DNA of 56,856 nucleotides from Octopus sinensis (GCF_006345805.1 NW_021833610.1:1-56856), one strand, 5' to 3'; counted from the stretch's first letter, positions 5,701 to 30,900 are shown. Translations and numbers: made by a program. The notes: generated by a model not told the origin, from the letters alone.

Positions 5701-8700
5701 TATTGTAGTCTTTACGGTTAAGCGTGACATGAGGCTCTGCCCTGCTGCACTAGAATTACTGCTTTGGGTTCTGAACTCATCGTGGGTCACAGCCCTAGAG
5801 TGGACTTGGGGTTTTCATTGATGGTTAAGATATATAAATCTATAATGACCCTTCCTGAGTAAGGTTACCTTTGTGCTGTCCACTTACCCTATAAAGGTGA
5901 CAACCGACGAGGGACCAATGTCACTGCTGATGGTGTCATTGCTGTCACTTTTGTGTCCCACTTGACAATGCAGTGCATTATGTATAGACCCAGGTGTAGG
6001 ACTTGTGTGAAGAACAAGTTGAACAAAACAGGGTGAGCACACAGCCATGTTTTAGGCCATTGAAGATGTCAAAAGAGTTGGTGCAGTGAGTATTGCACAA
6101 AAACATATCCGGTTATGTTGTCGTGAAAGAGTCTTGTCAGTGGTCCTATCACCTCGCACCTGTCATCAAGGCTGGACTGGAACTACTGCTGGTACTTGGC
6201 TGATAGGAGTCTGGCCATGCTGAAGGCTGGTCTAATGAGCTCTCAGCCATTGTGGTGTTCGGGAACTACGCAGATGTTGAGCTTGGCTCTTATTAGTTTG
6301 TGGTCAGTCGAGCACTCTGTCCCATGCATTCTCCTGGTGATGAGGATGTCACTGCTATCACGCTGTTTTGAATGCAGATGTGTCCGTGATGTTTTATACT
6401 TATCAGCCAGCAGGAAGATGATGTTGGTAATCAGCAGGTTGTGCTCGGCGAATTTGCTCGGCAACTGAAGACCATTGCTATTCATTTACACAACTCCATA
6501 CTTCCATCTAACCCTTCTCCACCACTCTTTATCCTTGCCAACAACAGCATTGAAGTACCCTAGTATTATAAGCTTGTCAGTAGCAGGCATGTGATGTAGC
6601 ACAGTGTCCCAGTCAGCACAGAACTGCTCTTTGATCTCTTCTGAGCATGAGATTGTAGGGTCATACCCACTCATGACAGGGACGAAGTGTTTGTGGCTGA
6701 TAGGGAAGTAGAGTTTCATAGGCTTTTCATTTACACCTGTATGAAGGTTGGGAGACTGTTTCAGGAGACAGGACTTAATGGTTTCTCCAAATACATATAT
6801 TCTCTTCTCATGTACAGTCTTTCCTTTCCAGAAGAAAGTGTAGCTGCTGCCTGATTCTGTCAGGGACCATTCCTCAGCCTAGATTGCTGCTAGGTCGATA
6901 TTGTATCACCACAATTCTTTGGCTAAGAATGATCCTTGTAGCAATGGTTAGGTCTTTCTTTCTCCGTTTGAATTGACTGCAAATGGCTAAGTCTGTCAGC
7001 TGCGAGTAGTTGACCAAATCTGTTCAGGGAAAGCTTTCTTTAAGGCACTTTTTCTAGACCCTTATCTTACTAGGGTGTGCAGTGTGGTCCTAATAACACT
7101 GCTCAGTCACTTAGGTTGCTGTTAAATTTTCTGATGTGTAATGCAATGACAGTGACCACTGGTCTGCTGGTCTCCTATGTGCAGGCTTGTGACTAGAACT
7201 CTGAGCACTCATCTCCACCTGCTGTCTTCACCAATGGTCTATCTCACCACAGGGTATGAGGTTGACTGTTGGAAGGCTGAGAAGCACAGACACCTGTGCA
7301 TGAAATTGTTGTAAGTTTGGAAGCCATTACACAAAGATAATTGCACTCTCTCATCAAGAAAAAAATACTTGAGTCAGTGGCATGGAACATCGCTATGGTT
7401 GGAGACCGTTTCTGCAGCAGGGGATGACCAGAGGCCCATAGTGATTCATCATGCAGCATGCACCCTACAAAACCTGCTGGTACTGTCAGTCCTATGGAAT
7501 GTGATTAACCACCTCCCACAAGAGTTACTAACCCTCCCTGATATAAAGAAATTACACATATGTAAATACAAAAATATACAAATACAAAAATATAACAATA
7601 TAATAGAATATGAAATAAGAATACAAAAATATCAAAAAGAAAAATGCTAAAACTATCAAAATATAAAAGGGGTGCATAAAAATATAAATATAAATGTATA
7701 ATATAGAAATATGAAAAAGAAGTTTTGAAAATACGCAATTCAGATATACTTTCATGCACGTGCACACACACACAAACCAGACATACATATATACACATTA
7801 TTGAATGGCCATTGTCTACTCATGAGATCCTTCACCTTTTCGCAGGTTGAATTTCCCATCCTACAGGGTATCCAACAAATACCCAGCAAGCTCAGTGTAG
7901 TGGCCAGTTTAGTCACTGACCATCCGACCATGTGATACGTTGTACTGCGTTACATGTTACCAGTAGCAATTAAGTGTGACATGACATAATTTGAATATAC
8001 ATTTAAGATAAATAAAAAAAGTATTTACCTGATGATGCAGCTGAACTACCTGTTGTGTTTCCTTGGAAATATTCATCAAATTTCTGTTAGAAGTAAACAA
8101 ATAATTTATCATCACTCAATCAAAAACATAATTTCATAATTAATTTCTGTTAATTTCAATGCAATGCTTTTATTCATTGCTTCTATCATGAATGTTGTTT
8201 TAAATTTACATTTCTATTCACTGTATTATAAAATAAACTCCTACGATGGACAGGGTTTGGAATATTCTGTCGTTCGGTGAGGAATTGTTACTTAAAGAAT
8301 AAGAAAACATTATTCATGGAATTGTAATTGCTTTCGAGACTCCATGTTATGTCCAAGCATCAGCTTAAGTCTTCATTATTTTCAAAACTGATTAAAACCA
8401 AAAGAAGAACATTTCTGTTGAAACAGACTGGCTTTGAGTAAATTCCAGTGAATTACTGGTATGTCAACAGTGCTTTACTTCAATGCTATATATACTGTCC
8501 TACAGAGTATATCTGCAGATGTGTACCCAACACTGGAGAAAGAAGAAAAGGAACTGGTCCAGCCAAACAATCTTTTTCTGTCCCCAACACATATTGTATA
8601 CAGAAAGTGTATGTATGACCCTCAGTTTATACACACCCGTCTTACTATACATACAGAATATAGTTGTATACAAACAACGTACTTACATTAGTCTATATGT

Positions 8701-11700
8701 ACAAATATAGTCTATAGATGTTTACATTAGTCTGTATATACAGATGCTGTATATCAACACTAGACATTTCAAATAACAACTCTGACTATTACACACTTCT
8801 ATGCACAATGAAAAGATATGAGAGATAAACTATTATGATTTGTTTCTTTGCTTTAATTTTTGCATTATTCTATTCATCTCCTGCTTGTGTTTGTATCATG
8901 TTGAAACAAACCCATCTTTAATTTAATTTAATTTAATCCACCATCATCAAAGTTTCTCTCCTAATGCCTCATTTCCTCATTTAATTATTAACGTCAATGT
9001 AAATATATATCTCTGTTATTGTAAATATATCTCACCTCTCCTCTATCTCCATTACTTCATCAGCTGTGGAAATGTGCAAATCCCATCATTTCATCTTTTC
9101 CTTACTCATGATGTGCCCATCCGCTCATGCTCTCATTACCTACATTTCTTCTGTACTGGAACCCCTCCCAACAATCCTTCTTCTGCCCTCCCCACTTCCT
9201 TCCCTTCATAGTTGCCTCTCATCCATATCACTGCAACACTAATGTCGTACTTTCTATACTTTGCACCAAAATGCAGAACCTATCAGTCCGTTAATTGATT
9301 AACTAATTAGTTATTTTCATATGTTCATTACTGTATTAACAATGCTTGTATAGCCCTCACTTCAGGCAGATGCAGCAAGTATAAGATGAATGAATAATGG
9401 CAGATAAAATGCATAGACAATTGATATGGCATGCCTGGTGGGAAACGTTTGCTGAATCCTTCCTCCCAGATGCTGAATGCCATTCTCCTTCTCCCTCTTA
9501 CCCCCTGCCCCAACCTCCTGAAGTTCCCTACAATTGGCTTTGTCAATGTAGACACATTGAAAGCTAGGTCTGTTGAGATGTTCTAACAGAGGTGTTTCGA
9601 TGTGTGCTGCCTTCAAGAAGTAAGGTGGAGAGGAGCTTCGTCCATATACCTCACAGGCAAAATACATATCTATATAATCTTCTGGGAAAGCAACAGCGAT
9701 GGGGTAGGCGGAGTAGTCATACTTCTAGCTAGGAAATGGGTGGGTAATGTAGCTGAGGTAGTCAGAGTGTGTGTTTGGGTACTTGAGCTCAGAGTAGTTT
9801 TGTAGAGTTGTACGGCAACAGTTATTTCTGCCTATGCCATTCAGATTGGTCTGCCAAATGAACAGAAGGATTGCTTTTATGATATTCTTTGGCAGATCAT
9901 CTCAAAAACTTTGAATGATCGGATATTTAGAGATGTCCTAATTGAAACTTAATATGAACCAGGAAGAGATAGAGATATGTAAAATAGAGGACAGCTAGAA
10001 GTTCTTACGAGACAACTGGAAATGAAAGATCCGGACGCTTAACAATTGTAAGGAAGTTCAGGAGGGTGGAGTAGGGTGTAAGATGGAGAAGGAGAATGAC
10101 ATGCAGCATCTGGGAGGAAGGATTCGGCAAGCATTTCCCATCAGGCATGCCATATCAGTTGTCTATGCATTTTCAGTGAAGCATTTAATGAAAAAGAGGG
10201 GAGTTACAGACGTGTAACACAGAAGATACAGGGAAGTTCCCATGAATCAATTTACTGAGATCTGCAGACCAAGTTTTGTGGGTGGTGTTAAATCTGAATC
10301 AGACCTATGGTAGCATGGTGTTGGAACAGTGTAGTAGACAGGGCCATTAGAGTGAAGAAAGAGGCCTGGAAATGTGATGGTAGTAGAGAAATATATGAGC
10401 AGGGAAACTAGGAGACAGGTATACTCAGCAGGAAGTAGTGAGTTTGTCAGTTCTTTCTATTGCGTGAGGACTTGAGGCTTGAGGTGTTTTGTATGTGAGG
10501 AAAAACCGTGATGTTGTAGGAGAGAATTATATTTGGAACAAGGGCAGTAAATGATCAGTTCTATTTCTTTTCTTTATTGTGGAATATTGGTTTTTGGTAA
10601 ATTCCAAGAATATCAACATCAAACAACAAATAAATCAACCAACCTTTACTATTTCTGTGTCTTGAGGATAAACCATGAAGTAAACATCTTTGATCTGGCT
10701 TGAATTTTGGTTTGAGTAGTTTTTCACTGCTTCAGACATTGTTCTGGGTAGATTTTCAATGGGGTACTTCAATGTTCCAGCTCCTAATATAGGAAATGCA
10801 AGGCTTTTTGCTCCCATTCTCTCAGCAGTTTCCAGACAAGTCGTTATTATTTGAGTCAAGTTTGCCAGAATCTAAAAAAAATAATTGTTTAGTAATTGAT
10901 AATGAACATTTTATGGAACTATTTCCAAATTCTTCTTACAGGGAGAAATCATTAAGTTGTAATAAATATATTCTTTGATTAAGAAATTTCCCACATATTC
11001 CGCCGATATGAGCCTCGAAAGGAGAGTAAAAGGACTCGGGGGCAGTTTCTGAAGGACCCGTACGGTTTTACTAAGAAGCTGTTCGCTGAACCGAAGAGTG
11101 GTAATTTATCGTGCACTAAAGAAGAATTGGATGCTCATATTAAGGAAACCTACAGTGATCCGCACCGTAACCAGCCGCTGCCACCTCTACATGGGCTAAA
11201 TCATCTCTCAGGACCTGATATTGAATTCCAGATTGGGGACATCAGGGACAGAGAGGTGAATGACTTCGTAAGAAAGACTAGAGCAAAGAGTGCCCCAGGA
11301 GGTGATGGCTTCTCATATAAAGTCTCACAAGTACTGCAATCGTCTGCGAAAGAAGCTCTTTGTCCTATTCCGACAACTGTGGCATGAGGAGACTATAGTA
11401 GAGGATTGATGTAAGGCAGAAGGTATATACCTGCCGAAAGAGGCCAATGCAAAGACCACAAAACAGTTTAGGCCGATATCCTTATTGAATGTGGAAGGCA
11501 AGACCTTTATGGGAATTCTGTCGAGGAGAACAGTGACATATTTACAGAGTAACGGATATGATGATGAATCTGTTCAAAAGGCTGGAATCCCTGGGATCCC
11601 TGGATGCATTGAACACTGTTTTTCGATTTGGAAAGCAATCCAGGACGCCAAACAGAACAAGAAAAGTCTGAACGTAGTATGGCTCGATCTAGCTAACGCG

Positions 11701-14700
11701 TATGGTTCAGTGCCACACAAATTACTAATAACAGCCATGGACCACGTCCACATTCCTGATAAAGTGATCAAAATAATGAGGATGTAGTATGACAGTTTCG
11801 AAATGAGGTTTACAACTGGAAATTTTACAACAGATTGCCACCAATTGGAGGTTGGCATTGCTGCTGGCTGTACAATATCTGTCACGTGGTTTATCTTAGT
11901 CATGGAGTTGATTTTGAAAGGTGTAGATTTTTCGGAACAAATCGCCCATGTACAATTGCCTAAGAAAGCCTTCATGGATGGCGTGACACTTCTAGCTACA
12001 GATAAACAAATCATGCAGAATGCCCTCTTGAGATTAGATGAACTTGTAAGGTGATCAAGGATGCGATTTAGAGCAAAAAAGTCGCGTAATCTGACATTTG
12101 TTAAGGGAGTGCAGAAAGAATTTAAGTTTCGAATATCTGAAGCAAGCATTCCAACAGTCAAGGAAGAGCCCGTCAAGAGCTTGGGACGAGTATACGCTGG
12201 AACATTGTCAGACAGAAGTCGTGGGATTGAAATTATGAAACAGGCCGAGGCTGGGTTATCAGCGATTGATAATTTGAAGTTACCAGGTAAATATAAAATT
12301 TGGTGCTTGCAGTTCGGCTTGTACCCGCAACTTGCGTGGCCACTTTTAAAATATGAGGTAGCATTGTCACGAGTTGAAATTGTTGAACAAAAATGTAATG
12401 TGTTCATTAGAAAGTGGCTAGGCCTACCTCATATGTTGAACAGTTCAGCTCTTTATCTTAAAAGAGGTTCGTTGCAGCTACCAATAGCATCAATAGTCGA
12501 AATATATAAGCTGGGGAAGATACGGACGGTCATAATGCTGAGAGGATTGAAGGATATGGAAATCAGGCGTAACCCACCAGAGGTGAAAACAGCCAGGAAG
12601 TGGAAAGCAGAGGCAGAAACTGACGACATCTTTTCTTCTCTTATACCCAGAGATATGGTGGGAGCAATACAGAACCATCGGAAAGGATTTGGTTTTGGCG
12701 CAGATCAGTTCAGACTGTTTGCAAGCATGATGCGGAGTGAACGCAGAACTGTTGTTAGCAACAGCGTCAAAACAAGAGAAGCAGAGAGAAGAGAGCTTCA
12801 TTTGATCCGATGTTTTCATCAAGGTCAAATGACGAGATGGGAAGAACATGTTGTTGAGAGGAAGGTAAGTTGGGATGAGATGTGGAAGTGGACAACATCT
12901 CAGCTGAGTTTTCTGTTTCATTCATCTTATGATGCTTTGCCATCAACTACGAATCTAGTAAGATGGAACGTCTCAGAGAATGACATCTGCAAATGTGGAA
13001 AGGTCGGTACACTAAAGACGCAGGCTGGAAAGCGGAACATTTTCCAATCGAAGTCGGTTGTAGAGGGTTTATTGGATACAGCGTGAGGTGACTTGCTATC
13101 ACTAAGCCTTACTCATTGTAAAGTCAATGCCACCATGACTGATATCCAATCTACAGTGGAGAAGGCTAGCCACTGGATTTGGTTTAAAAAGAGACGATGA
13201 GCGATGGCTAGAAGGATATTAAGTTTAACTTTATAACCAGCTGATCTAGCAATCGGTGTGCATTGATGCCGTCGAGAGGTAGGCCCCGAAACAGCGTGCA
13301 TTCTCTCCTGATGACCCCATACACTTGCTGGCTTCCGATATACGGAGCTTTTGACTGGTAGCACTTGCATGTGCAAGTTGTTTGCAAGACATATTTAGTT
13401 GTTGCAAACTGAAATGGTATATGATTTACAGATTAGAATAACATTTAAACAACATCAAGTGATTACTAGATTAATAGACGACGTGATCATTGGATTAACA
13501 TAGATCATGTGACAGAAGGATCAACATAGATCATGTGATAGAAGGAAGCCTGTCTGAATGAACATATGGATGCCATGAATAGAAAGAGAAATGTTGTAAG
13601 ATTAGGTGGATACACAGTGTAATTGAAGTAGGCTCTTGTAATTAATGGAAACAACAACAGGTAATAAGAGAGATTAATGATTCTTTACAAGAGGGAAATC
13701 TGAGTGAGAACACATTGTAAAATGCAGCAATAGAGCCCACAAGGTAGGACAACACAGAGAACCGCCTGGGATGCAGTGTTTGGGATACAACATCCTCTAT
13801 ACTGCACACAAGAGACTGTATTTTAATGTAATAGTTTGTTCAAGGAATATCTACAATACAATGTATATCAATCAATTTCGAACTGGATGTTAGCAAGCAT
13901 TAGGAACAATTAGAATGGTTTGTGAGGACAAAACTGTCTCATGGAATATGCTCCTAACATTGGCTATTTGATTCGTAATCAGTTGCCTATCGTCCATCAC
14001 CATGTGGAGGAAAAGGTCAGTTTTCCTCAATGGTGGCAGTTGCCTATCTTTCCAGTGGCCATTCCGAGAATTCATGATCTGGAAACTATAAGGAATGCTA
14101 CAAGTCCAGACTGTCACACTGTAGCCCATACTGTACATCAGTGGACACCAAAGTACATGCTTCTGTCTTGAAGCAGACGGAAGTGTTGTATGACTGGAAA
14201 AACACATCTGTGGATTGTGCATAGTTTTATGGACAATTCCGTTCATGCCACAGGGATGCTGGATCAATGATAACCTAGGGTTGTACAACAACTCTTTCAA
14301 TAAATCAATATAATATGATTGATACTTACTAAATGTGAGGAGTTTACACCCCAGGGAGGTAATACCAGATGAAATACTTTCTCACATTTGAGGTTATATC
14401 CTTTAGTGATGGCTATTTCAGATGTAGAAATACCTTTAGGATATTTCTGGTTACATTCAACTTGTATCTGTGGACCAGCAGCATTGAGAATAAATTTGGA
14501 GATAGAACCATCATTAAGCTGGAGGTGTTTATTGGTGCTGTTAATGATGACATCAACCTACAAAAGAATTTAATGGTAAACAACTAAGGAACATTCCATG
14601 GAGAGAAGAGAGATACATTGTTGCAGTTGATATTGTTGTTAAGAAAGGCTCTACAGAATGGCTGTAGTAAGTTTGAGGTTGTTAAAGTTAGCAAAAGATA

Positions 14701-15657
14701 TACTCAAGATATCAGATGTGAAGGAAATAAAATGTTTGAGTTTGATTGAGAAAATGTTTTAATTAACTGTAATGATTCCTCATTTGGAAATGAAATAACA
14801 ATTAAATAAATAAGTTACATGAATCTATTTACTCACAGATGCATTAGAAATTGAATCAATCATTAGGTTTATTTTGATACCAGGATTCTTTGTCAGGGCC
14901 ACATTAGTTCTGGGTATCACAGAAGCTGCTTTCTGTTGTGGATGAAGAGGGGATGGGTTTGATAATGAGGTCCCTGAAAAGAAACAAGTATTAATTAACG
15001 TGTGTGTGTGTGTATATATATATATATCTTATTATAAAAGGTAGATTTTATCTGCCTCCCTTTGTCTCTTATAGAAATCTACAATATAGGATTTCTTCAA
15101 TTACAATTTACCTAGCATTTTTAAGAGTAGAATACATCGGGTCGTGCCAGGTCCAGTTTTTCAAATTTCAACCCCATTTAAGCAAAATTTCGAGAAAACT
15201 CACATTGTGGTGTGTAAGTGAAGTGCTTTTCTTAGTGTGGGCTACAGCACACACACACGCACACACACACAAACGGAGCAAACTGCTTCACTGATGCTAT
15301 CACCCTAATTTCTCCTCCTTTCTCTTTGCAAGTGTGCAACGATTAAAGTGAAAGTATTTATATAAAACGAGAGAAGTGTACCTTAAACCACTACTCAAAA
15401 AAAAAACAACACAGCAAACAGAAACAAATAAATACATAACGATTTACTCCTCACACAATTTCTTCAATTAGAGTTTACCTATGATTTTTCAAAGTACTTC
15501 CATTCGGTCATGGCATACAAAATTTCTTTCAATTTCACCTCCATTTCAGAAAAAATTCAAGAAAACTAAATATTTTACCATTTCACTCTTTCACTCTGCA
15601 TTCCCACTTCCTCTTTACACACATAGACACGCAAATATATAAATAAAATTGTAAGCT

Positions 15658-15693
<36 letters not shown>

Positions 15694-18600
15694 CGTGTGT
15701 GTGTGTGTGTGCATGTGTGTGAGTGTGTGACAGGAAAGTTTTTTAGGACGAATATAAGATCTAAAGTATATCCAAGTAGCAGAAAGATCGCCCAAAAGTG
15801 TATATAGATATTTAAATGTATTTATATATTCATCTATGCACACATGTATGTATAACGTGTGTGTATATATTTCCATAGAGGTAACCATTCACTCCATACA
15901 AAGTTTTTTAGGACGAAAATAAGATCTAAAGTTATCTCTAAGAAAAAGAAAGATCACCCAAAAGTGTATATAGATATTTAAATGTATTTATATATTCATC
16001 TATACACACATGTATGTATAATGTGCGTGTATATATTTCCATAGAGGTAACCATTCAATCCATACAAAGTTTTTTAGGACGAAAATCTTTATATTTAAAA
16101 GAAAGGTTGTGTGTCTGTCTACTCCGATTTAGATTCCTAACTACTCCCACATTTTGCGATGCAGTTTAACCAAAACCGGGTATCTTATAGTCGTGATTCA
16201 TATCGAGCCCTTCTGGGTATTAGCGCGCGTCTACAATGAGTCTACGATTTTACAAATAATTTACCATCATTTTTTTCCATTTTAATGCATATTTTTTAAA
16301 TAAAGGGAAGTAACTCTCAAACTTCACACCAATATGCGTGCTCATATGCGACGTAATATCACATCAGCAGCATTTCCTCACACCCTCCTTGCACTTGGTG
16401 AAGGCAAAATACCAGGGGATGAAAGTGGTAATATTGCCATCAATTCCATTTGTACCTTTGTTAAGACGCCTTCTGATCTCAGAGATGCAGTGTTCCCAGA
16501 TCTACAAGCTAATTATCAGAATATGGATTGGATTGGCCAAAAGGCTATACTGGCCCCGAGGAATAAAACTGTTCACCATATTAATGATGAAATGCTAAAA
16601 CTCATTCCTGGGGAAGTCTATGTATATCAGTCTATCGATACAACTCCTGACCCAGAGGACGTCATCAACTATCCAATAGAGGTACTCAATTCCTTTGAGC
16701 ACCCCGGACTACCACCACACTTTCTCAAACTTAAAGTTGGTGCCCCTATAATGCTCATCAGATATTTGGTTCCCCCAAAACAATGCAATGGCACACGTTT
16801 GATCGTTAAGTCCTTATCTCCCACCGTAAACTTATATCAATATTTGCCTGAATAATCATCATAATAATTCAGTGCAATCATTAACAGTACTTTCAAGCAA
16901 TTCAGCCCTGAGCAACGCCGGGCAATTCTGCTAGTATATATATATAAGCAATGTAACATATCTGGAATGGTACAACAATGCAGAGTGGACTATAATAACT
17001 GTTAGAAATAATTGAATTATTCATGGTCTAATATTTTGGATTATAAAAATTCCTACCTCAGAGATTGCTTGGAACTAATGGAGTCCCTATTATAGTTGGT
17101 TTTCTTATTCTTCTAATGGTTACTGAAATCTGTTGGAAGCGTTCTTGTAATAGTTTCATGAAGTTCTTTCTGGAATACCTCAGGAGAAGTGTGTGAGGAT
17201 TGTCATGTCTTGAACTCGTGTGTGTTGGTACATTCATAGCACTGTTTTTCTTGTCAGTTGTTTGACCATAACCAGTTGAGCATGTCCCTTAGTGGCTGAT
17301 GATATGTGCTTCTCTGATCATGAGCAGAAGTAGTGTGGGTGCATCATAGCTATGTGGTGAGAGGGATTCTTTGGGGTTTGAATAATTCACCCCTGGAGAC
17401 AAGGGTGTTTCATTCAACATCCTTTAATAACCTTTATTCAGGGACCTTTTGAGTGTGATGGGCTACTTGACCTGAAGAAAATTCTAACTGGGCCCCACCT
17501 GATAGGCCATGCACTGTTTATCTTGATAAGAGATAACCATGTTGCGCACATATGGTTGTGATGCATGAGCCTGGTGTACCCTTAATAGATGGGTAGAAAT
17601 GATGTGGATACTGCGCTTTGTATATTTGTACCCCATTGTTACTTTGATGGCATTTGCTGCTCTCTCATTCAATAATAATAATGGCAATAAAAATAATTGA
17701 TGATGATGATGAGAAAAAGTGTCACTAGTTTCTTCCTAAATGATATTTAATATAAGAAGAAAAAAAAACAAACGAATTTACCTGATGATACATCTGAACC
17801 ATCTGCTGACATTTGTTGGAAATATTCTTTAAATTTCTGTTAAAAGTAAGCAAATAATTTATCATTACTCAATGAGAAAATAATTAATTTCTGCTAATTA
17901 CAATGCAATGTTTTAACTCATTGTTTCTATCACAAATATTGTTTTAAATTAATATTTTCATTTATTGTATCATAGAATAACTTCCTATGAGGAAGAGGCT
18001 TTTGAATATTCTGTAGTTTGGGGAGGAATTTTTACTTACAGAATAAAAAGAAATGAAATTTGCTTGTTTAAGTGACTGTAAAAAATTATTCATGGAATTG
18101 AAATTGGTATTAAGATTCCATGTTATGCCCAAACACCAGCTTAATAATGACAAAGCTAATTTACTTTATTGTTCGTTACTTTCAAAACTGTTTAAAACAA
18201 AGGAAGAACATTTCTGTTGAAACAGACTGGCTTTGAGTAAATTCCTGTGAATTACTGGTATGTCAACAGTGCTTTACTTCAATGCTATATATACTGTCCT
18301 ACAGAGTATATCTGCAGATGTGTACCCAACACTGGAGAAAGAAGAAAAAGAACTGGTCCAGCCAAACAATCTTTTCCCGTCCCCAACACATATTGTATAC
18401 AGAAAGTGTATATATGACGCTCAGTTTATATACACCCGTCTTGCTTACACCCATCTATGCATAGCCAATATAGTTTATAGAGACACGACGTTTACATTAC
18501 TATAAAAATATATATATACAGATATTGTATATATAGACAAGACATTTACATTAGTCTGTACACACAGATCTTGTACATCTCCCTCTCTCTCTTTCGGAGA

Positions 18601-21600
18601 GGCACAAGCACCTACACGCACATATACACACACGGCAGTAACTTCCGCCTGCCGAATTCAATCACAAAGCTTCGGTCAGCTCGGGGCTATAGCAGAAGAC
18701 ACCTACCCAGAGTGCCACGCAGTGGGACTGAACCCGAAACCATATAGCTAGGAAGCAAGCTCCCTAACCACACAGCCATGCCCGCGATTATATAGATATG
18801 GGTGTATATGGTTCTGTATGTGTGGTTCGCCCTGAAAGTCCCTGAAACGATGTATCCTCAAGAAAAAACGAATTTGATATTCAAAATCTGCATCCCAATG
18901 AATGGTCATCCATAAATAATAATATAAAAATATAATTTGCAACGAGAACTCAACTGCAAATGTCTTTCTCTCTATTTGTTACCATGAATCTCTCTCTATT
19001 ATTTTTCTCTCTGCCCCTCTCTCTCTCTCTCTCCCTATATATATATATACACACACACACACACATGTATTACCTCTCACGCATTGCTTTCATACTGTTT
19101 AAAACAATGTCTTCTAAAGTTTACTTTCGTTGTATCACAGCTTCTATGCACAAACCCTGTTTTTTCATTGCTATTCTGACCTCGTCTGTAGAATTCATAT
19201 TTTTTACATCCAAATCATTTTTGAAGACTGCAGAATGAATGATATAATCAGATGGAGCAATGTCTGACGAATATGGTGGGTGGGGCATCGTTTCCCATTC
19301 AAACTGCTCCAGCCTTTGGAATGTCATTCTTGCTGTATGTGGCCAAACATTATCCTGATGGAAGAACACCTTTCATCTTCAAACCAAAGATGGTCGTCGT
19401 TCTTCTAGTGCTGACTTAAACTGCTCAAGCTGCTCACTGTAGATCTCCTTTGTTATTGTTTGGTTTGGGTTTAAAAGTTCAAAGTGGACTTAACCTTTCA
19501 TATCTCACCAAACTGATAACAACACCTTATATGGATGAAGACCTTCTTTCTCCTGGGGTATCGGTCTTTCTCCTTTCCCTACACACTTCAGTACTTGACA
19601 TTCTTATAGAGAACCCATTTCTTGTCACCAGTCGCCATTCAGTCCAAAAAAGATTCATTCATGAGATGTGACAGCAAAGAAGAGCACACCTTAACTCTCT
19701 GTGCATGATTAGACTCAGAAAGTTAGTGAGGAAATCATTGACACCATTTGCTGTTTGCTGACTTTGTCTGGTGGCATGCAGGTGTCGATGAATGGTTGAA
19801 TGACCAAATACAAGCTTCTCTGTTAGTTCCTTAACAGTATGATGAGATTTTGTTCCACCAGGCTTTGCAGGACATCCTCATAGAGCTCTACAGATCTTCC
19901 AGAATGAGGGTTGTCTTCTAGGCTGTAGTTTCCAACACAGAATTTGTGGAACCACCATTGACACTGGCTTATACTTATTGTCCAATCCTCATATACTGTA
20001 TTAATATTCCTCACACTTTCCATTGTCTTTATGCCGAATATGCTCCTTTGTAACTTCCATTGTAGCTTTGAAAAAATGACTGTTAAAATTGAACTACACT
20101 CTTCAAAATTTGAATTAAGAATAATTCAAAGGTAAAATTACTACCTGCTTTTATAGCAAGTTGATGCAGGTCGTATTTTTTCCCATCCCCCTCCAACTTT
20201 CAGTTCATGCAATGGAAAAAATCACATTATTTATGGAAAAGAAATGTGTCTGCATGGATGATGGCTCAATTGCATTTAATGATGCTGCAAAGAGAGAGAC
20301 TTGGAGATACCACTATGAAAGGTTGTCAAATGAAGAGAATGAATGGGAGAATGAGAGTCTGCCAACAGAGAGACCAACTATCTAAATTTACAGTACCTTG
20401 GTAGATAAAGCAATTAAGGGTATGAAAACAGGGAAAGCCCGGACCCATCAGGAAACACTGCAGAGATGCTTAAAACATCTGGCAGTGTCGGCTATAGCCT
20501 AGTCACCCATATAGTCAATCAGGTGATACATGAAAGAGTCGTACCCAATGACTGGTGTAGCAGCATAATAGTCAACTGCTACAAAGATAAAGGTGACACT
20601 TTAGATACAAATAATTACAAGGGTATCACATTGTTGGATCAGGTAATGAAAGTCACAGAGAGGGTTGTAGCCCAACTAATTAGGGAGAGAGTTAGTTTAG
20701 ACAAGATACAGTTTGGGTTTGTGCCAGGGAAAAGCACCACTGATGCTATATTTCTGGTAAGACTGCTGCTGGAGAAATACCTAGCCAAAAATAAACCTAT
20801 GTACCTGACTTTCGTTGACATGGAGAAAGCCTTTGACAGGGTCCCCTGATCACTTATCTGGTGGTCAATGCGGAAACTGGGGATAGATGAATGGTTAGTG
20901 AAGGCTGTACAAGCCATTTGCAGGGATACTGTCAGTAAGGTGAGGGTTGTCAACAAGTATAGTGAAGAATTCTGAGTAGGGGTCCACCAAGGACCAAGTC
21001 CCTAACTCCATTTTATTCATCATAGTCCTCCAGACAATAACAGAGGAATTCAAGATAGGATGTTCCTGGGAGATACTCTATGCTGATGACCTTGCTCTTA
21101 TAGCTGAGTTACTATCAGAACTAGAGAAGTTTCAGGTGTAGAAGTAATGTCTAGAATCAAAGGGTCTTAGAGAGAATTTCGCAAAAAGCAAGGTCTTAAT
21201 AAGTAGGAAGGCAGACAAATCACAAATCCATTCAGGTAGATGTCCTGCTTGATCTGTAGAAAAGGCATCGGTAGAAATTCCATAAGATGTACCCAGTGCA
21301 AGCTATGGACACACAAGAGGTGCAGCAATATCAAAGAAGGCTAACTGGGAAGATAGTTTTTGTGTGTGCCAAATGCAGAGGGGCGATAAACACTGGAAAC
21401 ACATGCCAGGTGGAGAAACTAGAAGTAGTTCATAGCTTCTGTTACCTAGGTGACCAAGCCAGCATTGGGGGTGGATGCACTGAGAGCAGAACTTCTTGAA
21501 TGAGAATACCCCAGGCAAAGTGCAGAGAGCTCCTACCTCTGCTGGTAACAAAGGTAGACTGTATGACACATGTGTGAGAACAGCTATGCTACATGGCAGT

Positions 21601-24600
21601 GAAACATAGGCTGTGACAGTTGAGGATATGCATAAGGTCACAAGGAATGAAACCAGTATGCTCCACTGGATGTGTAATGTCAGTGTGGATACACAACAGA
21701 GTTTAAGAACCCTGAGAAAAAAGTTGGACATAAGAATCATCAGATGTGGTGTGCAAGAGAGACGACTGCACTGGTATGGTCATGTGGTGCAAATGGATGA
21801 GGATAGCTGTGTGAAAAAGTGTCACACCCTAGCAGTGGAGGGTACTTGTAGAAGAGGTAGACCCAGGAAGACATGGGATGAGGTGGTGAAGCATGACCAT
21901 AAAATGTTGGGCCTCACAGAGGTGATGACAAGCAACAGAAACCTTTGGAGATATGCTGTACTTGAGAAGACCTGGCAAGCCAAGTGAGACGATAACCATG
22001 ACCTATGCCAGTGTAACATAACCAGCCCAATTAAGAGTACCCATCAATCCTTGGCCAATAAACTGCACTTGAGGAGACCTGTTGAGTCAAGTGAAATCAT
22101 TGTTATAGAGGATGCCAATACTGCCTGATTGTTCCCATGCTGGTGGCATGTAAAAAGCACCATTCGAGTGAGGTTGTTGCCAGTGTTGCCTGATTGTTCC
22201 CATGCTGGTGGCATGTAAAAAGCACCATTCGAGTGAGGTTGTTGCCAGTGTTGCCTGATTGTTCCCATGCTGGTGGCATGTAAAAAGCACCATTTGAGCT
22301 TGGTTGTTGCCAGTGCCACATGACTGGCCCCCATGCCAGTGGTACATAAAAAGCATCCACTACAATCTCGGAGTGGCTGGTATTAGGAAGGGCATCCAGC
22401 TTCAGAAACCTTGCCAGATCAGGTTGGAGCCTGGTGCAGACTTCTGGTTTGCCAGTCCTCAGTGGAACCTTCCAACCCATGCCAGCATGGAAATGAGACA
22501 TTAAACAATGATGATGGTGATGATGATGAAGCTGATATTCCACCCATCTCTGCTATTGATGCTCAAACACAGAGTAGGGTTTGCTGACCCCTGTTACTTT
22601 GTTGAACACTTGACCATATCAGATTTTATATTTTGGAGATATCTACACTCCAACAGGGGGTTGAGTTCCACTCAGTTACATTGATGTTCTTGGAAAAGAC
22701 ACAGAACAAGAAGCAGAGTAAAGGGGGAGGAGGCGGACAGAGATTATTGGTGTGGAATTGTGAAATGTGTCTTGATTGTGGCAGCTTGGAAGAGGAGGAG
22801 GAAGGGGAGGAGAAAAGAGTGAAAGGAAGACAGACAGCACTGATTTCAAATCTGCTGAATCAGAACTGACTCGGGGTTAAATAAGAACAGTCAAACTGCA
22901 AAGAAGACCTTCAGTGTTACCAATTCTTGTAGAGTTGGTTTTGAATCCAATAACAACCAACAAGCAAAACATTCTTAGCTTCAAATGTTACAATGGAATA
23001 TTTCAGAAGCAAGAATTTGGTGATGGGAAATGGTATAATGAAAGGATAAAGCACAAGATATAATGAACAGCCTTAAAGGTAGCATGAAGAAAGGTACCCA
23101 GGACATGCTGTGAAGTGGTTGGCATTAGGAATGGCATCCAGCCATAGAAACCATGCCAAAGCAGACACTGGGGTTTAATAAACCCTTCTGGCTCATTGGA
23201 GCCAGTCAAAATGTTGCACCCATGAAAGTATGGAACAAGGGCAGTAAATTATTATGAGGGTCATTTCTATTTTCTTTTCTTTATTGCGGAATATTGGTTT
23301 TTGGTAAATTCCAAGAATATCAACATAAAACAACAAACAACAAATACATCAACCAACCTTTGCTATTTCTCTGTCTTGAGGATAAACCGTAAAGTAAACG
23401 TCTTTGATCTGGCTTGGATTTAGATTTGAGTAGTTTTTCACGGCTTCATACATAGTTCTGGGTAGATTTTCAATGGGGTACTTCAATGTTCCAGCTCCTA
23501 ATATAGGAAATGCAATACTTTTCACTCCCATTCTCTCAGTATTTTTCAGACAAATGGTTATTATTTGAGTCAAGTTTGCCAGAATCTAAAAAAAATAATT
23601 GTTTAGTAATTGATAATGAATATTTTATTAGAGGAAGGAATTGTTAAGTTGTAATTAATATATTCTTTGATTAACAGATTCCACACAGAATTTGTTGTTC
23701 TGAACAGAAATGTTTTACACATTTGAATAACATTAAACAACTTCTAGTGATTATTGGATTAACAGATCATGTGGTCATTGGATTAACATGGATTAACATG
23801 TGACAGAAGGATCAACACAGATCATGTGATAGCAGGAAGTCTGGTCTGAGTGAAGATATGGATGCCGTGAATGGAAAAAGAAATGTTCCAAGATTTGGTG
23901 GTTGCACAGTGTAATTCAGGTGGAATTTTGTAATTAACAAAAAAATAATAGGGAAGAGGAGAGATTAATTATTATTTACAAGAGGGAAATCTGGGTGAGA
24001 ACATACTGCAAGAAGCAACAAAACCACCCACAAGGCAGGGCGCCACAGGCACAAAAGACTCTACACTGCACACAAGAGACTATGGTTGAGTCGAAATGTT
24101 CAGGGAATATCTACAATAGAGTCTACATCAATTTCAAACAACCAGAATCCATGCTTTGGAAATTGTACAGAATACCACAACACCAGACTGTAGCCCATAC
24201 TGTAGCCCATACTGTACGTCACTGGACATCAAAATACATGCTTCTGTCTTGAAGCAGACGGAAGTGTTGTATGACTGGAAAAACACATCTGTGGATTGTG
24301 CATAGTTTTATGGACAATTCCGTACATGCCACAGGGATGCTGGATCAATGATAACCTAGGGTTGTACAACAACTCTTTCAGTAAATCGATATAATATGAT
24401 TGATACTTACTGAATCAGATGAATTTTCATCCCAGGGAGGTAATACCAGGTGAAATACTTTCTTACATTTGAGGTTATATCCTTTAGTGATGGCTAATTC
24501 AGATGTAGAAATACCTTGAGGATATTTCTGGTTACATTCAACTTGTATCTCTGGACCAGCAGCATTGAGAATAGATTTGGAGATAGCACCAATGTTAAGC

Positions 24601-27600
24601 TGGAGGCTTTTATTGGTGCTGTTAATGATGACATCAACCTACAAAAGTAATTAATGGTAAACAACTAAGGAACATTCCGTAGAGAGAAAAGAGATACATT
24701 GTTGCAGTTGATATTGTTGTTAAGTAAGGCTCTACAGAATGGCTGTAGTAAGTTTGCGGTTGTTAAAGTTAGCAAAAGATTTACTCAAGATATCAGATGT
24801 GAAGGAAATAAAATGTTTGAGTTAGATTGAGAAAAGGTTTTAATTAACTGGAAATGATTCCTCATTTGCAAATGAAATAACAATTAAATATAAATATGTT
24901 ACGTGAATCTATTTACTCACAGATGCATTAGAAATTGAACCAATCATTAGTTGTATTTTGATGCCAGCATTTTCTCCGGATGCCACATTAGTTCTGGGTG
25001 TCATAGGGGCTGCTTTCTGTTGTGGACCAAGAAGGGAAGCGTTGAATGATGTGGTTCCTGAAAATAAACAATTAAACATTTTTCTCTCTCTCTTAAAAGA
25101 ACTACTTTATTCCATATAAATAGTAATGATATTCGTTTCTGAAAATAGGATTTAGCAAGAGAATACATGCTAACTTGTAGTCACCCCCCCCCCACACACC
25201 TTTTATATAGCGACAAGGCTATATAACGTTATTTCCATCTATTTCTTCTACCACATGGACTAAAAATACATTGAAGAACATACTTGAAACTTTCAAAGTC
25301 TGAAAACAGTGAAACTGGTTAGTAAAATGTGATCTTCCACCTCTTATGAAACGTTTTTGCTTAAAACATTTATTAAAACAGGCTTCAGATGGTGTAGATT
25401 CCAGTAAGTTGGGAATTTGGTGTGAAAAAAATGTTTTTGAGAGAATGAAGAGAGGAGTTTCAGAAAATTCACATAAACTCAAATTCGTTTCCTCATAACT
25501 TTTGGGAAAATGGTTATTTTTAAATGAAAATTTCCACAAATACCTTTAAGAGTGTGTATATCACGATAATAAAAGAATTTAATATGAAAATAAAAATTGC
25601 AGACATAAATACTGATACATGTCAGATATTTGTTTTGAGACCTTTTTTTATTTTTTACCTCAAATTCCAGTAGAATTGGAATTTATACCATCTGAAGCAT
25701 ATTCATAAAAAATTTCATTAAAAAATATGCTTTTCTTTAAATTTTAAGGAAAGGAATTCATTGCAACACACATGTATAGGCATGGTGCAGGTAATGTTCA
25801 GGCTAGTTGCTATATATCATTGCACATGTGTGACCAGAAGTCCATAATAAACATGTAGTCTTTAAAATTTTAGTGAAGGATATATATATATATATATTTT
25901 TTTTTTCTAGTTTCAGCTCAGAGCTGCGGTCATGCTGATGCACCGCCGTTTTGTGCTACACTGTTATTACGACGAACCTCGTCTAATATGTGGCACTTGG
26001 TGAAGAATGGAGTTTGATATAGCTACTCTCATTTGCACCTCTTGCCGTGAGGTAGGCTCATCTGGGACTCTTGACAGGAAGATGTCCAGCTTTGATTTAA
26101 AAACTGCTACATCTACTTTGTGCAAGTTCCTCAGACTCTTTGGGAGAATATTAAAAAGCTGTGGGCTCTTGAAACCCAGGCTGTTGCAGAAGCTGGTCCT
26201 GAAGCGTGATGACATTGCTGGGATCTTTGGCACTATGCAGTGTCATCCCGTTCTAGCATTGGTGTAGCTTACAATGCCAAAATTTGGTACCATTCCTTCC
26301 AGGATCTTCCAGACATATATTACTGCATACCTGTCCCATCTTCTCTCCAGGGAGTACAGTCTTAGCTGTTTCAACCTTTCCCAGTAGCTGAGCTGTTGCA
26401 AAGAGACGATCTTCTTTGTGAATCTTCTCTGGATTGCTTCAAATTCCGCTGTTAATTTTACACTGGTGGGTGACCATAGCTGTGAGCAGTAATCCAGGCA
26501 GCTGAGGGCGAATGTCCGCCAGAGGACCATCATGGTTTCTTTATCTATGATTCTGAATGTTCTTAGGATCCACCCAGCCAGTTGTCTGCACTTTGTCGCC
26601 ATCCTGGTAATGTGCACTTGGAAAGAGGTATCATCATTCATGTCGATACCCAGGTCCCTCACAGACTTAGGCTCTGGGATTGAAATTCCCTGTGGACCAG
26701 TGTATCCTGTAAGTTTAATATTCAGTTTTGGATGCTGGTAGCGCAGGGCCTGGAAATTTTCAGCATTAAACTGCATATTATTATCCTCAGCCCATCTGTA
26801 GATTGAGTCCAACTCCTGCTGCAGGTGTGCAACATCGCTGGGGTTCTGTATTTTCTGCAAGACTTTCGTATCGTCTGCATAGCCGGGCATTTGAGGGCAT
26901 ATCTGAGAGGGCCACTATAAAAAGCAGTGGTCCCAAGACAGTGCCCTGTGGAACACCGCTCACTATTTGTGTGTTCATAGAGGTGGCTCCATTAACCACT
27001 ACTGCCTGACTCCTATCTTTCAGGAAGTCATGTAACCACACTCCTAGTTTTCCAGCTATGCCGAGGTGATGTAGTTTGTGGCATATCATACCATGATCCA
27101 ACTTGTCAAAAGCTTTTGCAAAATCAAGGTAGATTACGTCTACATTTGATTTGTTGAGTAACTGCCTCAACACCCAGTCATAATGCTGTAAGAGCTGGGT
27201 CAGGCAGCTCCTACCTGGTCGAAAACCATGCTGGGAATCACTCAGCAAGTTATTTTCCTCAAGGAATGCGATTAGTTTCTTTCTGACTATCCTTTCCATG
27301 ACTTTGCTGATGTGTGAAGTCAGAGAGATAGGCCTATAGTTTTTGGCATCTGCTCTACTTCCCCCTTTATGTATTGGGCATATTATTCCCTCCTTCAGCT
27401 TGCTTGGCAGTGTGCCATTCGCAAGAAAGCTCTGGAAAAGAATCTTGAGGGATTTTGCCAGGGCATGCTTACACGCTTTGAGGAGGATGGCTGGGAAACC
27501 ATCTGGACCAGCAGCTGAGTTTGTGTCCACTTCATCTATGGCTAGTAGGACATCTTTTTCGCTAATGTCAATACATTCTATTGTAACCGCCTCGCTGGTT

Positions 27601-27900
27601 ATAGGTGAGGTGGCAAAGAAGTCCCCTGGTTCATTCACTTGTCTGTGTTCCAACGGGGTGGTAAAGACCCTTTTGAACTGGTCATTCAGCATCTCACTGA
27701 TCTTAGTTGGACTGTCTGTGAGGGAGCCATCCTTTTGGAGGAGGGGTCCTATCTTGTAGTGCAGTGAGACTGTTTCTTTCGCGTAATGAAAGAAGGCCTT
27801 TGGGTTTGATTTAATGTTTTTTATAACCCAGGCCTCTTTGTCTGCTTTCTTCTTCACATAGGATTGTTGCAGCCTTTTTTCGATGTCCATCAGTGTTGTT

Positions 27901-27937
<37 letters not shown>

Positions 27938-30900
27938 ATATGGTGCATTTTAAACCTTTTTTGTAATTTTTCTTTCATGTATATATCACTCATATGGCAG
28001 TGTTGTCTGCATCACATGACTCAGGCTGATGGTCATGTGATAAGTAATTTGTAACAGGGTAACCTGTTCAAGGAAAGAAACTTGGTTATTCAGTTGAAGA
28101 AGGCTTCCAGAGCTAAATGGCCTCTCGTAAATACTTTAGAGCCAGCCAACTCTATAACTCTTGGTTCAACATTATTGGACGTAAGAAAATAAAACAGTTA
28201 TTACAAGAAATTTCTCTTTAAAGAATGATTAGTAGAAAATGTAAGTCATCATAATCATCGTCATTTAACATCCACTTTCCATGCTGGCATGGGTTGGACA
28301 GTTTGACTGAAAGTGATAGGCTGGAGAGCTGCACCAGGTTTCAGTCAGATTTGACACAATTTCTACAACTGGATGCCTTTCCATATGCCAACCACTCCAA
28401 GAGTGAAATGGGTGCTTTTTATGTGACACCAGCATCGTCTATGATTTCATTTGGTTTGATGAGTCTTCTCAAGCATGGTAAATTGCCAGAGGTCTCAGCA
28501 ACTTATCATCTCTGTGTGGACCAAAGTTTGTAAGGTACTTTTTGTGTAACACTGGCATAAGCCACAACTACAATTTCACTTGGCTTGATGGCTCTTCTTA
28601 AGCACAGAATATTGCCAAAGATCTTAGTCACTAGTCATAACCTCCATGAAGCTCAATGTTCGAGGATCGTGCTTCACCACCTCATCCCTTGTCTATTTTG
28701 GGTCTATCTCTTCCACATGTCCCCTCCAAAGTGCAGTCTTCTCTCTTGCACACCACATCTGATGCCTCTTGTGCACCATTTTTCTTTCCAGATGCTTACA
28801 CTCTGCCATACATGCACACTGACATTGCACATCCAGTGAAGCAGACTGCCTTTATTTCTTTCAAGCATTTACATGTCCTCTGCAGCCACAGCCCATGTTT
28901 CACTGCCGTATAGCATGGCTGTTTGCAAACAGGTATCATACAGTCTACCTTTCACTCTGAGGGAGAGGCCCATCATTATCAACAACGGTAAAAGCTCTCT
29001 GAACTTTGCCCAACCTAATCTTATTCTTACAGCTATGCACTTGGAGCATCCACTTCCACTACTAATTTGTTCACCTAGATAGCAGAAGCTGTCAACTACT
29101 TCTAGGTCTCCTTCACAGGCATTTGATGGAGTTTATTTTCTGTACATTTCTAGTGCTTATTGTACCTACAAACAACAACAATCTTCCTGGTTAACCTTCC
29201 TTTGATATTGCTGCACCTTTTATGTGTCCATAGCTTGCACTGGGTTCATCTTATGGAGTTTCTACCTACACCTTTTCTGCAGATCAAGCAGGGCAGTCTA
29301 CCTGAAGGGATTTGTGATTTGTCAACTTTCCTACTTGCTAAAACTTTGGTTTTTTCTAGATCAACTCTAACGCCCTTCGATTCTAGACCTTGCTTCAATG
29401 CCTGAAACTTCTTTAGTTCTGGTAGTCAATCAGCTATTAGAGGAAAGTCATCAGCTTAGAGGAGCTCCTGGGGACAGCCTATCTTGATTTCCTCAGTTAC
29501 TGATGAATAAGAGGGGGCTGAGGTGAACCTCTACTTCTACCTGGAATTTTTCACTATACTTGTTGCCAACCTTTAACTTGCTGACAGCATCCCTGTACAT
29601 GGCTTGAACAGCTCTCACCAACTACTCATTTATCCCTAGTTTCTGCAGTGACCTCCAGATAAGGGATTGGGGGACTCTGTCAAAAGCTTTCTTTATGTCA
29701 ATGAAGGCCAAGTACAGAGGTCTACCTTTGGCTAGGTACAGAGGTTTATTTCCCGCAGCTGTCTTACCAGAAATATAACGTCAGTGGTGCTACTCCCTGG
29801 CACAAACCCAAACTGCATCTCGTCTAAACTAACTCTCTCCCTAGTTATTTGGGCTATGACCCTCTCCATGACTTTCATCACCTGATCCAACAATTTGCTA
29901 ACTCTCCAATGTCTGTTTTTTGTGGGGGTGGGGACACTTTATACCTTCATATTAATTAGAATATGAACAATAGTCATGTTTACAATGTATCAGATAAATA
30001 ATTATAATCATCCTTTGTTAAGGAATCACAGAGTGAGACAAGAGTATTTTATCAACAGCTATAAATTAAACATCATCATCATCCTTGTTTTCACATCCAT
30101 TGTTCCCTGCTTGCATGGGTCAGATTAGTTTATTGAGGCAGACTTTCTATAGCTGGATGCTCTTCCTGATGCTGACCCTCGCCTGTTTCCAAGCAAGGTA
30201 ATATTTTCCCCTGGCCAGACGTGGTTTCCACAGAAGACAGGAAACAAACAACCTCACTTGTATGCTGGGGATGCTCGTTTACAGCCATCACATGATGTCA
30301 AGACGAGTACAAACACACACACACACACACAATACATATATGAGGGGCTCTTGTATCAGTTTCTATCTTCTAAACCAGTTGACAAGACTTTGGTCAGCTC
30401 AGGGCCATATTAGAAGATATTTTCTTGAGTTGCCTTACATTGGGAATCAACATGGTTAGAAATGAAGCTTTTTAACCACAAATCCATGGCTGTGTCCATA
30501 AACCAATAATAGGAATCAGATAAAAGTTGACTGAACGAAGAAAAATCTTAATTAACACCTGAAATAAATCAAAATTTTCTCTAAAATATCAAATAAATAA
30601 CAAGTCCTACCTCTGCTTTTACTGATTCCAAACACCATTTCTAGATGAAGCTTAAAAGCTCTGATTACTTCCTTCTGTACATCAATCAAACAAATATGTT
30701 TTATTTTAGAATTTGAGTAAGCATCAAGATAATTCTTTATAGTTGTTACTATACATTCAGTTCCTTCTTCTATGGGTATACCAAAAGTACCTGTAATAAA
30801 TAAAGTATACAACATATTTAATCCAACAAATGTTCTTACTCAAAATATATATAATTAACTTGTGATATAATTTCAGTAATTTATCGGCTGCAATGCCAAG

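Follow-up and report, generated by a model that had tools for sequence, protein, structure and literature searches.

In the HLA-DRB1 genes of the major histocompatibility complex (MHC), young homogenized introns reportedly lie beside an old, mosaic exon 2 (Cereb et al., 1997; Bergstrom et al., 1998), and models of duplicated genes that undergo conversion with selection for divergence (Innan, 2003; Teshima & Innan, 2004) are said to apply to the RHD/RHCE pair. Conserved introns and hypervariable exons have reportedly been found together in snake-venom phospholipase A2 (PLA2) and conotoxin genes (Nakashima et al., 1993–95; Olivera et al., 1999). The ADP-ribosylation system of vertebrates is a front line of virus–host conflict. 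In primates, the macro-PARPs PARP9, PARP14 and PARP15 are under recurrent positive selection, and the macrodomain positions concerned map outside the ADP-ribose site (Daugherty et al., 2014; PMC4038475). Clusters of PARP14-like paralogs are reported in lancelet and sponges (PMC13224862). The locus described here lies in a stretch of 56,856 nucleotides (nt) of octopus DNA, the whole of which is referred to as the window. Its minus strand carries a PARP14-like gene that consists of a macrodomain (macro1) followed by two tandem macrodomain cassettes, A and B. The exons of A and B differ more from each other than the introns beside them, and this contrast is attributed here, with a probability of roughly 0.6, mainly to concerted evolution of the introns next to older, reshuffled and probably selected exon variants. 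The observation is one instance of a stronger pattern that runs through the whole cassette family. Searches of the literature for expansions of PARP14 or macro genes in octopuses yielded no paper on the octopus cassette family.

Cassettes A and B each comprise four exons (137, 228, 228 and 55 nt; 648 nt in total), enter and leave in phase 1, and have phase-0 junctions within the cassette; intact AG/GT sites are present at all eight exons (Table 1). Exon 1 differs between A and B at 27 of 137 nt, with 15 amino-acid changes and four purely synonymous codons. The corresponding values are 19 of 228 nt, 12 amino acids and five codons for exon 2; 20 of 228 nt, 12 amino acids and seven codons for exon 3; and 12 of 55 nt, nine amino acids and no codon for exon 4 (in total, 48 of 216 amino acids). 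Of the 279 nt aligned in intron 1, 16 are substituted; only three differences occur in the 176 nt that follow exon 2, and loop 2 lies inside a run of about 60 nt that is identical in A and B. A preliminary description made from the sequence of the window had given the exon and amino-acid counts, all of which were reproduced exactly, as were its intron counts and the identical run around loop 2. Its statement that the exons are more diverged than the neighboring introns also holds beyond chance, with 78 of 648 nt differing in all exons versus 28 of 614 in the exon-proximal introns (odds ratio [OR] 2.9, p = 1.3e-6). The divergence of exon 1 exceeds that of intron 1 (OR 4.0, p = 2.5e-5) and the divergence of exon 2 exceeds that of the following 176 nt (p = 0.003), whereas exon 2 compared with intron 1 plus 200 nt of intron 2 gives only p = 0.09. 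All eight exons have the lengths and positions that this description implied, although the span that it gave (14330-25057) omits exons 3 and 4 of cassette B (10644-10871 and 8029-8083).

The side of this contrast that is unusual is the intron. Synonymous divergence between A and B (20.7 of 146 sites, 14.1%) equals that of deep alignable intron (169 of 1157 nt, 14.6%; p = 1.0), whereas the proximal introns, at 4.6%, show only a third as much (p = 9e-5). Because synonymous sites match the deep intron and exceed the proximal intron, the exons stand at an old neutral level, and the proximal introns are anomalously similar. The exon–intron contrast is thus mainly due to homogenization of introns and not to faster substitution in A or B. 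The pairwise ratio of non-synonymous to synonymous divergence (dN/dS; Nei-Gojobori method) is 0.79 overall, 0.85 in exon 1, 0.77 in exon 2 and 0.39 in exon 3; exon 4 has 12 non-synonymous and no synonymous changes on only 11 synonymous sites.

An unplaced 91-kb contig of Octopus sinensis (L001) is collinear with the window at 1.2–3.5% substitutions and is its ortholog. The window cassettes (WA, WB) and those of the contig (SA, SB) were compared in a four-way alignment. Of the 27 differences between A and B in exon 1, 23 recur in both species and therefore predate the O. sinensis split. Only three old A/B differences are found in intron 1, all within 55 nt of exon 1, and the rest are lineage-specific singletons. 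Orthologous exons, with exon 2 of B excluded, differ by 1.9% versus 4.0% in intron 1, the range for orthologous intron 1 being 2.5–5.4%, and so exons neither mutate nor substitute faster. Since the split, exons 1 and 2 of WA have acquired three changes in 365 nt versus six in the 280-nt intron. The acceleration of exons that the preliminary description had supposed is thus absent at both depths, between cassettes and between species.

Exon 2 of cassette B has been exchanged. At 14 clustered sites, WB has states that are unique among the four orthologous cassettes, with SB carrying the A states, and about 10 of these 14 WB states occur in other paralogs. WB and SB differ at 22 of 228 nt in exon 2 versus 7 of 275 in intron 1 (p = 8e-4), which marks an exchange later than the species split. 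The B-type patch encoding loop 1 (AAT GAT GGT TCT ... TTT) is nucleotide-identical in two paralogs on an O. sinensis chromosome, and the A-type loop 1 'NIGAISKS' is confined to WA, SA and SB.

Nine cassettes with introns were collected from six loci in three species; A and B belong to an octopus family of at least ten macrodomain-2 cassettes at several loci. Among the cassettes of the window and O. sinensis, intron 1 differs at 1–20 positions per about 280 nt (for example, 1 of 281 between paralogs S2a and S5, and 4 of 279 between WB and paralog S3), and at 19–31 positions from O. bimaculoides. For introns 1 and 2, divergence is 0.4–4% among O. sinensis and window copies and 7–9% to O. bimaculoides. 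Exon 2 differs by 5–14% within the family and the linker part of exon 1 by about 20% (mean proportions of differing sites: intron 1, 0.05; exon 2, 0.10; exon-1 linker, 0.20). S2a and S5 differ at 15 of 860 nt (1.7%) in introns 1 and 2 versus 54 of 456 (12%) in exons 2 and 3. The proportion of synonymous differences in exons 2 and 3 is 0.10–0.22 versus 0.004–0.07 differences in the intron (Fisher's test, p down to 2e-9), and in codons with an invariant amino acid 30–35% of synonymous positions are variable versus 5–14% of intron-1 positions.

Paralogs within a lineage are closer than orthologs between lineages in the introns, which is the mark of concerted evolution, but not in the exons. The exons do not cluster by lineage, exon 3 of O. 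bimaculoides being closest to that of S2a. The introns thus evolve in concert, next to exon lineages that are older and trans-species. In a four-gamete test, 224 of 561 informative site pairs are incompatible, with a minimum number of recombination events (Rm) of at least 13 in 456 nt; this mosaicism, with the A-type state of SB exon 2 at 14 clustered sites, is of the kind by which gene conversion is recognized. S5 combines introns of S2a type, including a non-homologous 'type II' intron 2, with exons of the type of a further paralog, S2b. The 825-nt intron 2 of cassette A is 96% identical to intron 2 of S2b and S3 at other O. sinensis loci (34 of 810 and 35 of 813 nt differ).

Under the preferred reading, the short introns beside exons 1–3 would be kept young by repeated homogenization through gene conversion, the probable starting points of which are the invariant ends of the exons on either side. 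Much older variants lie in the exon interiors, where they would escape homogenization and are shuffled between copies in short patches. Diversifying selection on about one-fifth of codons, which include three loop-1 positions by the invariant glycine and the helix ahead of loop 2, most likely keeps these interiors diverse.

Tests of selection give different results for the A/B pair and for the family. Between A and B, dN/dS does not exceed 1, and changes are not enriched in the pocket set made up of GSI, loop 1 and loop 2 (5 of 30 versus 21 of 137, p = 0.79), so that the ligand-binding loops are not the focus of divergence that they had been taken for and positive selection on A versus B is not demonstrated. 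In the family of nine cassettes, omega is 0.87 under model M0, and model M2a fits better than M1a with two partitions (twice the log-likelihood difference [2dlnL], 23.0; p = 1e-5; 20.6% of codons with omega 3.2) and with four (2dlnL, 12.9; p = 0.0016; omega 2.4). In 36 mosaic null simulations without positive selection, built on eight segment-specific trees from the data with eight fixed breakpoints, the maximum was 5.8 compared with 22.5 observed in the same pipeline, and none of the 36 reached the observed value. Sites with posterior probability above 0.95 include three in loop 1 (NK-x, N-x-G and SK-x), four in the helix that precedes loop 2, and IL-x, IQ-x-EC and LP-x-W. Among the 11 best-supported sites, A and B differ at 7, the three loop-1 positions included. 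Across the family, mean variability is equal in the pocket and the remainder, loop 1 by itself has 4 hypervariable sites of 14 (p = 0.019, post hoc), and variable sites are evenly spread over codon positions. The inference of selection made in the preliminary description therefore fails for the pair for which it was drawn, but finds a probable counterpart in a family-wide class of codons with omega above 1 that includes loop-1 sites. The likeliest reason for exon diversity in these comparisons is that some codons, including those of loop 1, are under diversifying selection, although this is not proven.

It is unlikely that the contrast arose through pathogen-driven, recurrent positive selection on the ADP-ribose loops of A and B since the duplication, with exons outpacing neutral introns. 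The exons do exceed the proximal introns, loop-1 residues do differ between A and B, the omega class above 1 takes in loop-1 codons, and primate macro-PARPs evolve rapidly (PMC4038475); however, synonymous and non-synonymous sites are equally diverged, the former at the level of deep introns, most differences are older than the O. sinensis split or common to paralogs, and the WA exons have changed less than their intron since that split. The pocket shows no enrichment, and the sites selected in primates are themselves away from the ADP-ribose site. A host–pathogen cause of the divergence is conjecture.

Cassette A might alternatively be redundant and drifting to loss, with amino-acid differences that are neutral decay and similar introns left from past conversion. 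The contig segment L001 5290-5611 (ortholog of window 24638-24315) is without the 1.9 kb that holds exon 3 of A (window 22438-24315), and exon 2 of A on the contig has two 1-nt deletions, both frameshifts. No such damage is present in B, and SB has no indel in 648 nt although non-coding DNA has 4–10 gap openings per kb. Models of O. sinensis at NCBI begin in exon 4 of A or exon 1 of B, exon 3 of WA has the longest terminal branch, and the nine WA–SA exon differences are all or nearly all non-synonymous by our own reading of the alignment, not by a tool tally. Cassette A accordingly looks like a dispensable or decaying pseudo-cassette in the O. sinensis lineage, unless the unplaced contig is faulty, and an unexpressed, drifting cassette, which the preliminary description had named as evidence that would count against it, has in part been found. 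As an explanation of the contrast, drift of A is nonetheless improbable: all four A exons of the window are open with intact splice sites and invariant motifs, the exon–intron pattern occurs in many unbroken cassettes, and the frameshifts could be assembly errors.

Purifying selection on the exon-adjacent introns, through splicing enhancers, RNA structures or editing-complementary sequences, is a very improbable source of their similarity. Although intron 1 is near-identical in nine cassettes and conserved blocks flank exons 2 and 3 and occur in intron 3, orthologous intron 1 diverges at or above the neutral level (bulk DNA, 1.2–3.5%), and intron 1 of O. bimaculoides is 7% away with a 16-nt deletion, compared with 8.5–9% for neutral intron 2. 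An Rfam scan of the whole window gave no family match, and none of the conserved intron blocks therefore represents a known RNA. Hardly credible is a process, either exon-targeted mutagenesis or exchange with spliced cDNA, that raises exon divergence at all codon positions. Even spread over codon positions, the fall-off of differences within tens of nt of the exon ends, and the abundance of reverse-transcriptase elements at the locus would fit it, but orthologous exons are no faster than introns, shared polymorphisms extend past the exon ends, by about 55 nt in intron 1 and about 30 nt in intron 2, and there is no intron loss. Exon hypermutation or an RNA-editing footprint was considered and rejected, as transitions are about as frequent as transversions, there is no A/G excess and in particular no A-to-G excess, exons and introns have the same spectrum, and orthologous exons are slower. 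An assembly or polishing artefact is unlikely, given that the pattern is present in three assemblies and the A-specific intron variants are found in both the window and O. sinensis.

Several points weigh against concerted introns beside old, selected exon variants. A mechanical account without selection may suffice, in which identity at the exon ends favors conversion across the short intron and mismatches in the exon interior block it. The pairwise dN/dS is below 1 and the binding loops are not enriched; the site-model test used our own implementation with nine sequences, neighbor-joining trees and only 36 null replicates; its signal drops by about half with finer partitions (from 23.0 to 12.9); and omega can still be inflated by recombination on a finer scale and by the multi-nucleotide changes that conversion tracts bring in. 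The family loci are fragments. The exon-2 exchange may have run either from A to B in O. sinensis or from a paralog to B in the window species. Finally, cassette A is broken in O. sinensis, and relaxed constraint explains part of its divergence.

Cassettes A and B match the Pfam Macro family (PF01661) with 77 and 75.2 bits, respectively (cut-off 22), over residues 51–162 of each cassette. Among solved structures, the nearest is human PARP14 macrodomain 2 (3Q71/3VFQ; E = 1e-27, 97–99 bits, residues 2–173), and other macrodomains score weaker (PARP14 macrodomain 1, 2e-12; PARP14 macrodomain 3, 1e-12; PARP9, 2e-17), which places both cassettes, by similarity, in the PARP14 macrodomain-2 subtype. 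The best protein matches are 'PARP14-like' models of O. sinensis, O. vulgaris and O. bimaculoides (69–83% identity), followed by bacterial proteins at 34%. The name 'PARP14-like' comes from the database only, and the gene leaves the window after the acidic linker exon. No PARP catalytic domain is visible in the window, and a protein search with the C-terminal region gave no matches. Related octopus models (205–378 amino acids) contain macro domains only, one of them with a sub-threshold match to the PARP14 RRM (E = 0.004). Neither the loop-1 Gly nor 'AFPILGAG' varies in A, in B or across the cassette family; with this Gly and the loop-2 G-x-G intact, A and B are candidate ADP-ribose readers.

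The adenine-pocket difference noted in the preliminary description (GSI in A, DSI in B) and the two versions of loop 1 are present, but the residue that differs at 'GDI' is one before the canonical Asp position, which is Ser in both A and B and Gly in human PARP14 macrodomain 2. With Gly at this position, the human domain still binds ADP-ribosylated peptide with a KD of 6.8 uM (quoted in PMC6008491). 'GSI' is a single change in the window copy of A, as the O. sinensis A copy and most paralogs have DSI.

The window is eukaryotic DNA with many transposon remnants, and the motifs quoted in the preliminary description map to its minus strand. A self-comparison of the window reveals a unit of about 10 kb in two copies that can now be aligned in four blocks only (Table 1). 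Transposon remnants fill the large introns, and the two cassettes therefore differ in size. Within window 2613-40290 (-), the macro1 exons (ends mapped or inferred), the cassettes as units and the start of the linker exon are all in phase 1, an arrangement under which a domain cassette can be duplicated or skipped with no shift of frame. As the cassettes are frame-neutral, skipping of A or B would keep the frame, and a Dscam-like cluster of mutually exclusive tandem exons, with one unit per transcript, is conceivable. However, one O. sinensis model (P0002) begins in exon 4 of A and joins it to exon 1 of B, and another (P0001) holds two cassettes in series; A and B are probably spliced in series within one gene.

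Further observations concern the ends and introns of the cassettes. In the exon-4 region (window 8005-8368 versus 17757-18160), B and A are 74% identical and A is 89–92% identical to S5 and S2b. The 5′ linker part of exon 1 of B is of a type found in B only, in the window and O. sinensis, and cassette B is much older at its ends than in its middle. No more than about 17 nt ahead of exon 1 are homologous between A and B. In cassette B (window 14974-15030) and several paralogs, but not in A, the exon-1 polypyrimidine tract adjoins a CA/TA/TG dinucleotide repeat; the same repeat lies at about 13740-13787 of L001 and upstream of exon 1 on L003 and L005. Two unrelated versions of intron 2 exist in the family and share only their first 35 nt or so. 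A 1-nt insertion causes a frameshift close to the end of exon 3 of S2b (L002 33948-34176), and NCBI model P0001 reads through this insertion with the C-terminus ...SSQDQRCLLCGLSSRHRNSKEI; the frameshift reflects either a decaying copy or an assembly error. The 255-nt block in intron 3 was rejected as a special element, as it is part of every cassette at 90–94% identity. A short tandem array of 65-nt units occupies window 22091-22326 in the transposon-derived part of intron 3 of A, with a related copy at 38141-38246. A 115-nt satellite (4–5 copies, 85–92% alike) lies upstream of macro1 (window 41815-42389); a copy in O. sinensis (L001 11121-11472) is inverted and located in the A–B intron, where the window differs in sequence.

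Table 1. Features of the PARP14-like locus and related introns (window positions unless a locus label is given).
Feature	Position	Strand	Remarks
macro1 exon with canonical GDIT and NAAN...MGGV motifs	40128-40290	(-)	5′ boundary provisional; tblastn, translation
macro1 middle exon	34822-35070	(-)	249 nt, phase 1-1; tblastn, translation
macro1 last exon	30611-30790	(-)	180 nt, phase 1-1; in frame into A1; tblastn, translation and boundaries
Reverse transcriptase remnant upstream of A1	26790-27899	(-)	
A1, cassette A exon 1	24921-25057	(-)	137 nt, entry phase 1; linker and first strand with 'GSIS'; splice sites and frame
Cassette A intron 1	24639-24920	(-)	282 nt; apparently homogenized across cassette family
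A2, cassette A exon 2	24411-24638	(-)	228 nt; loop 1 NKSLQLNIGAISKS
Cassette A intron 2, proximal 200 nt	24211-24410	(-)	near-identical to B
A3, cassette A exon 3	23358-23585	(-)	228 nt; loop 2 AFPILGAGTLKYP; missing from O. sinensis orthologous contig
Reverse transcriptase remnant, A intron 3	20418-20846	(+)	
Mos1/mariner helix-turn-helix remnant, A intron 3	19826-20125	(-)	
Conserved block, A intron 3	18191-18445	(-)	96% to 8392-8646 in B; in every exon-4-bearing cassette
A4, cassette A exon 4	17782-17836	(-)	55 nt, exit phase 1
Pif1-type helicase fragment (Helitron-like) between A4 and B1	16304-16852	(+)	transposon remnant
B1, cassette B exon 1	14837-14973	(-)	137 nt; 'DSIS'
Cassette B intron 1	14558-14836	(-)	279 nt; apparently homogenized; 4 differences from paralog S3
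B2, cassette B exon 2	14330-14557	(-)	228 nt; loop 1 NKHLQLNDGSISKF
Retrotransposon (reverse transcriptase) insertion	11053-13083	(+)	enlarges B intron 2; Pfam RVT_1
Reverse transcriptase remnant, B intron 2	11410-11784	(+)	
B3, cassette B exon 3	10644-10871	(-)	228 nt; 2/228 differences from O. sinensis SB3
B4, cassette B exon 4	8029-8083	(-)	55 nt
Exon after B4, acidic linker 'DDEDEEIEDN...'	2613-2794	(-)	gene runs on past window start
Self-alignment block 1	25074-24144 vs 14990-14067		90.8%
Self-alignment block 2	24132-23710 vs 13872-13421		75.7%
Self-alignment block 3	23687-23231 vs 10995-10534		84.6%
Self-alignment block 4	18579-17757 vs 8755-8005		76.9%
Intron 2, type I	23586-24410; L002 33127-33947; L003 12600-13424		S2b has type I
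Intron 2, type II	L002 10576-11154; L005 9268-9847; L006 10590-11195; L004 1680-2258		

If the family-wide signal holds, cephalopods would have enlarged and diversified the readers of the ADP-ribosylation system. A further proposal is possible but doubtful, namely that the cassettes, in tandem inside genes and scattered among genes, form a germ-line repertoire of ADP-ribose reader modules in which specificity-determining loop-1 and helix residues are diversified by inter-cassette conversion under pathogen-driven selection; if true, octopuses would possess an innate-immune 'reader repertoire' with an evolution like that of MHC or snail FREP genes. The locus also offers a clean example, outside the vertebrates, of exons that are older than their introns, and it illustrates that an excess of exon over intron divergence can be mistaken for accelerated protein evolution when paralogs exchange sequence.

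Compared with human PARP14 macrodomain 2 (PDB 3Q71, 3VFQ, 5O2D), the octopus domain has the same non-canonical loop 1 (L-x-L-x-x-G-x-[LI]-S-K-S), a loop 2 of the form AFP-x-x-G-x-G, and no Asp at the 'GDI' position. Identity to the human domain is about 35%, and, unlike it, the octopus domain is encoded twice in tandem in one gene and many times in the genome, with no ADP-ribosyltransferase domain seen within the window. Primate macro-PARPs resemble the octopus family in that their macrodomains evolve fast and that genes of the family are gained and lost. The primate signal, however, is found among orthologs and on surfaces off the ADP-ribose site, whereas the octopus signal is found in paralogous cassettes that exchange sequence, includes loop 1, and is accompanied by a pairwise dN/dS below 1; octopus variation adjoins the ligand-binding glycine, unlike the distant surfaces in primates.

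Among systems in which exons and introns differ in age, the MHC shares with the octopus family recent coalescence of introns, trans-species exon variants, raised divergence at synonymous exon sites and mosaics of short conversion tracts. The MHC pattern involves alleles as well as loci of antigen-presenting genes, with dN exceeding dS in the binding groove; that of the octopus involves paralogous cassettes with an omega of about 0.9 and is read from sequence only. RHD/RHCE has comparable islands of divergence over selected exon segments with homogenized flanks, where divergence fades over the first tens of nt of the introns. The models for that pair assume two copies, whereas the octopus has many copies at several loci, where a mismatch barrier without selection is possible. 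Conotoxin and PLA2 genes, the former from a mollusc, resemble the octopus cassettes in that exons are far more diverged than introns in a young family. In those genes, exon substitution is accelerated and dN/dS exceeds 1, whereas orthologous octopus exons are no faster than introns and their excess is older, reshuffled variation.

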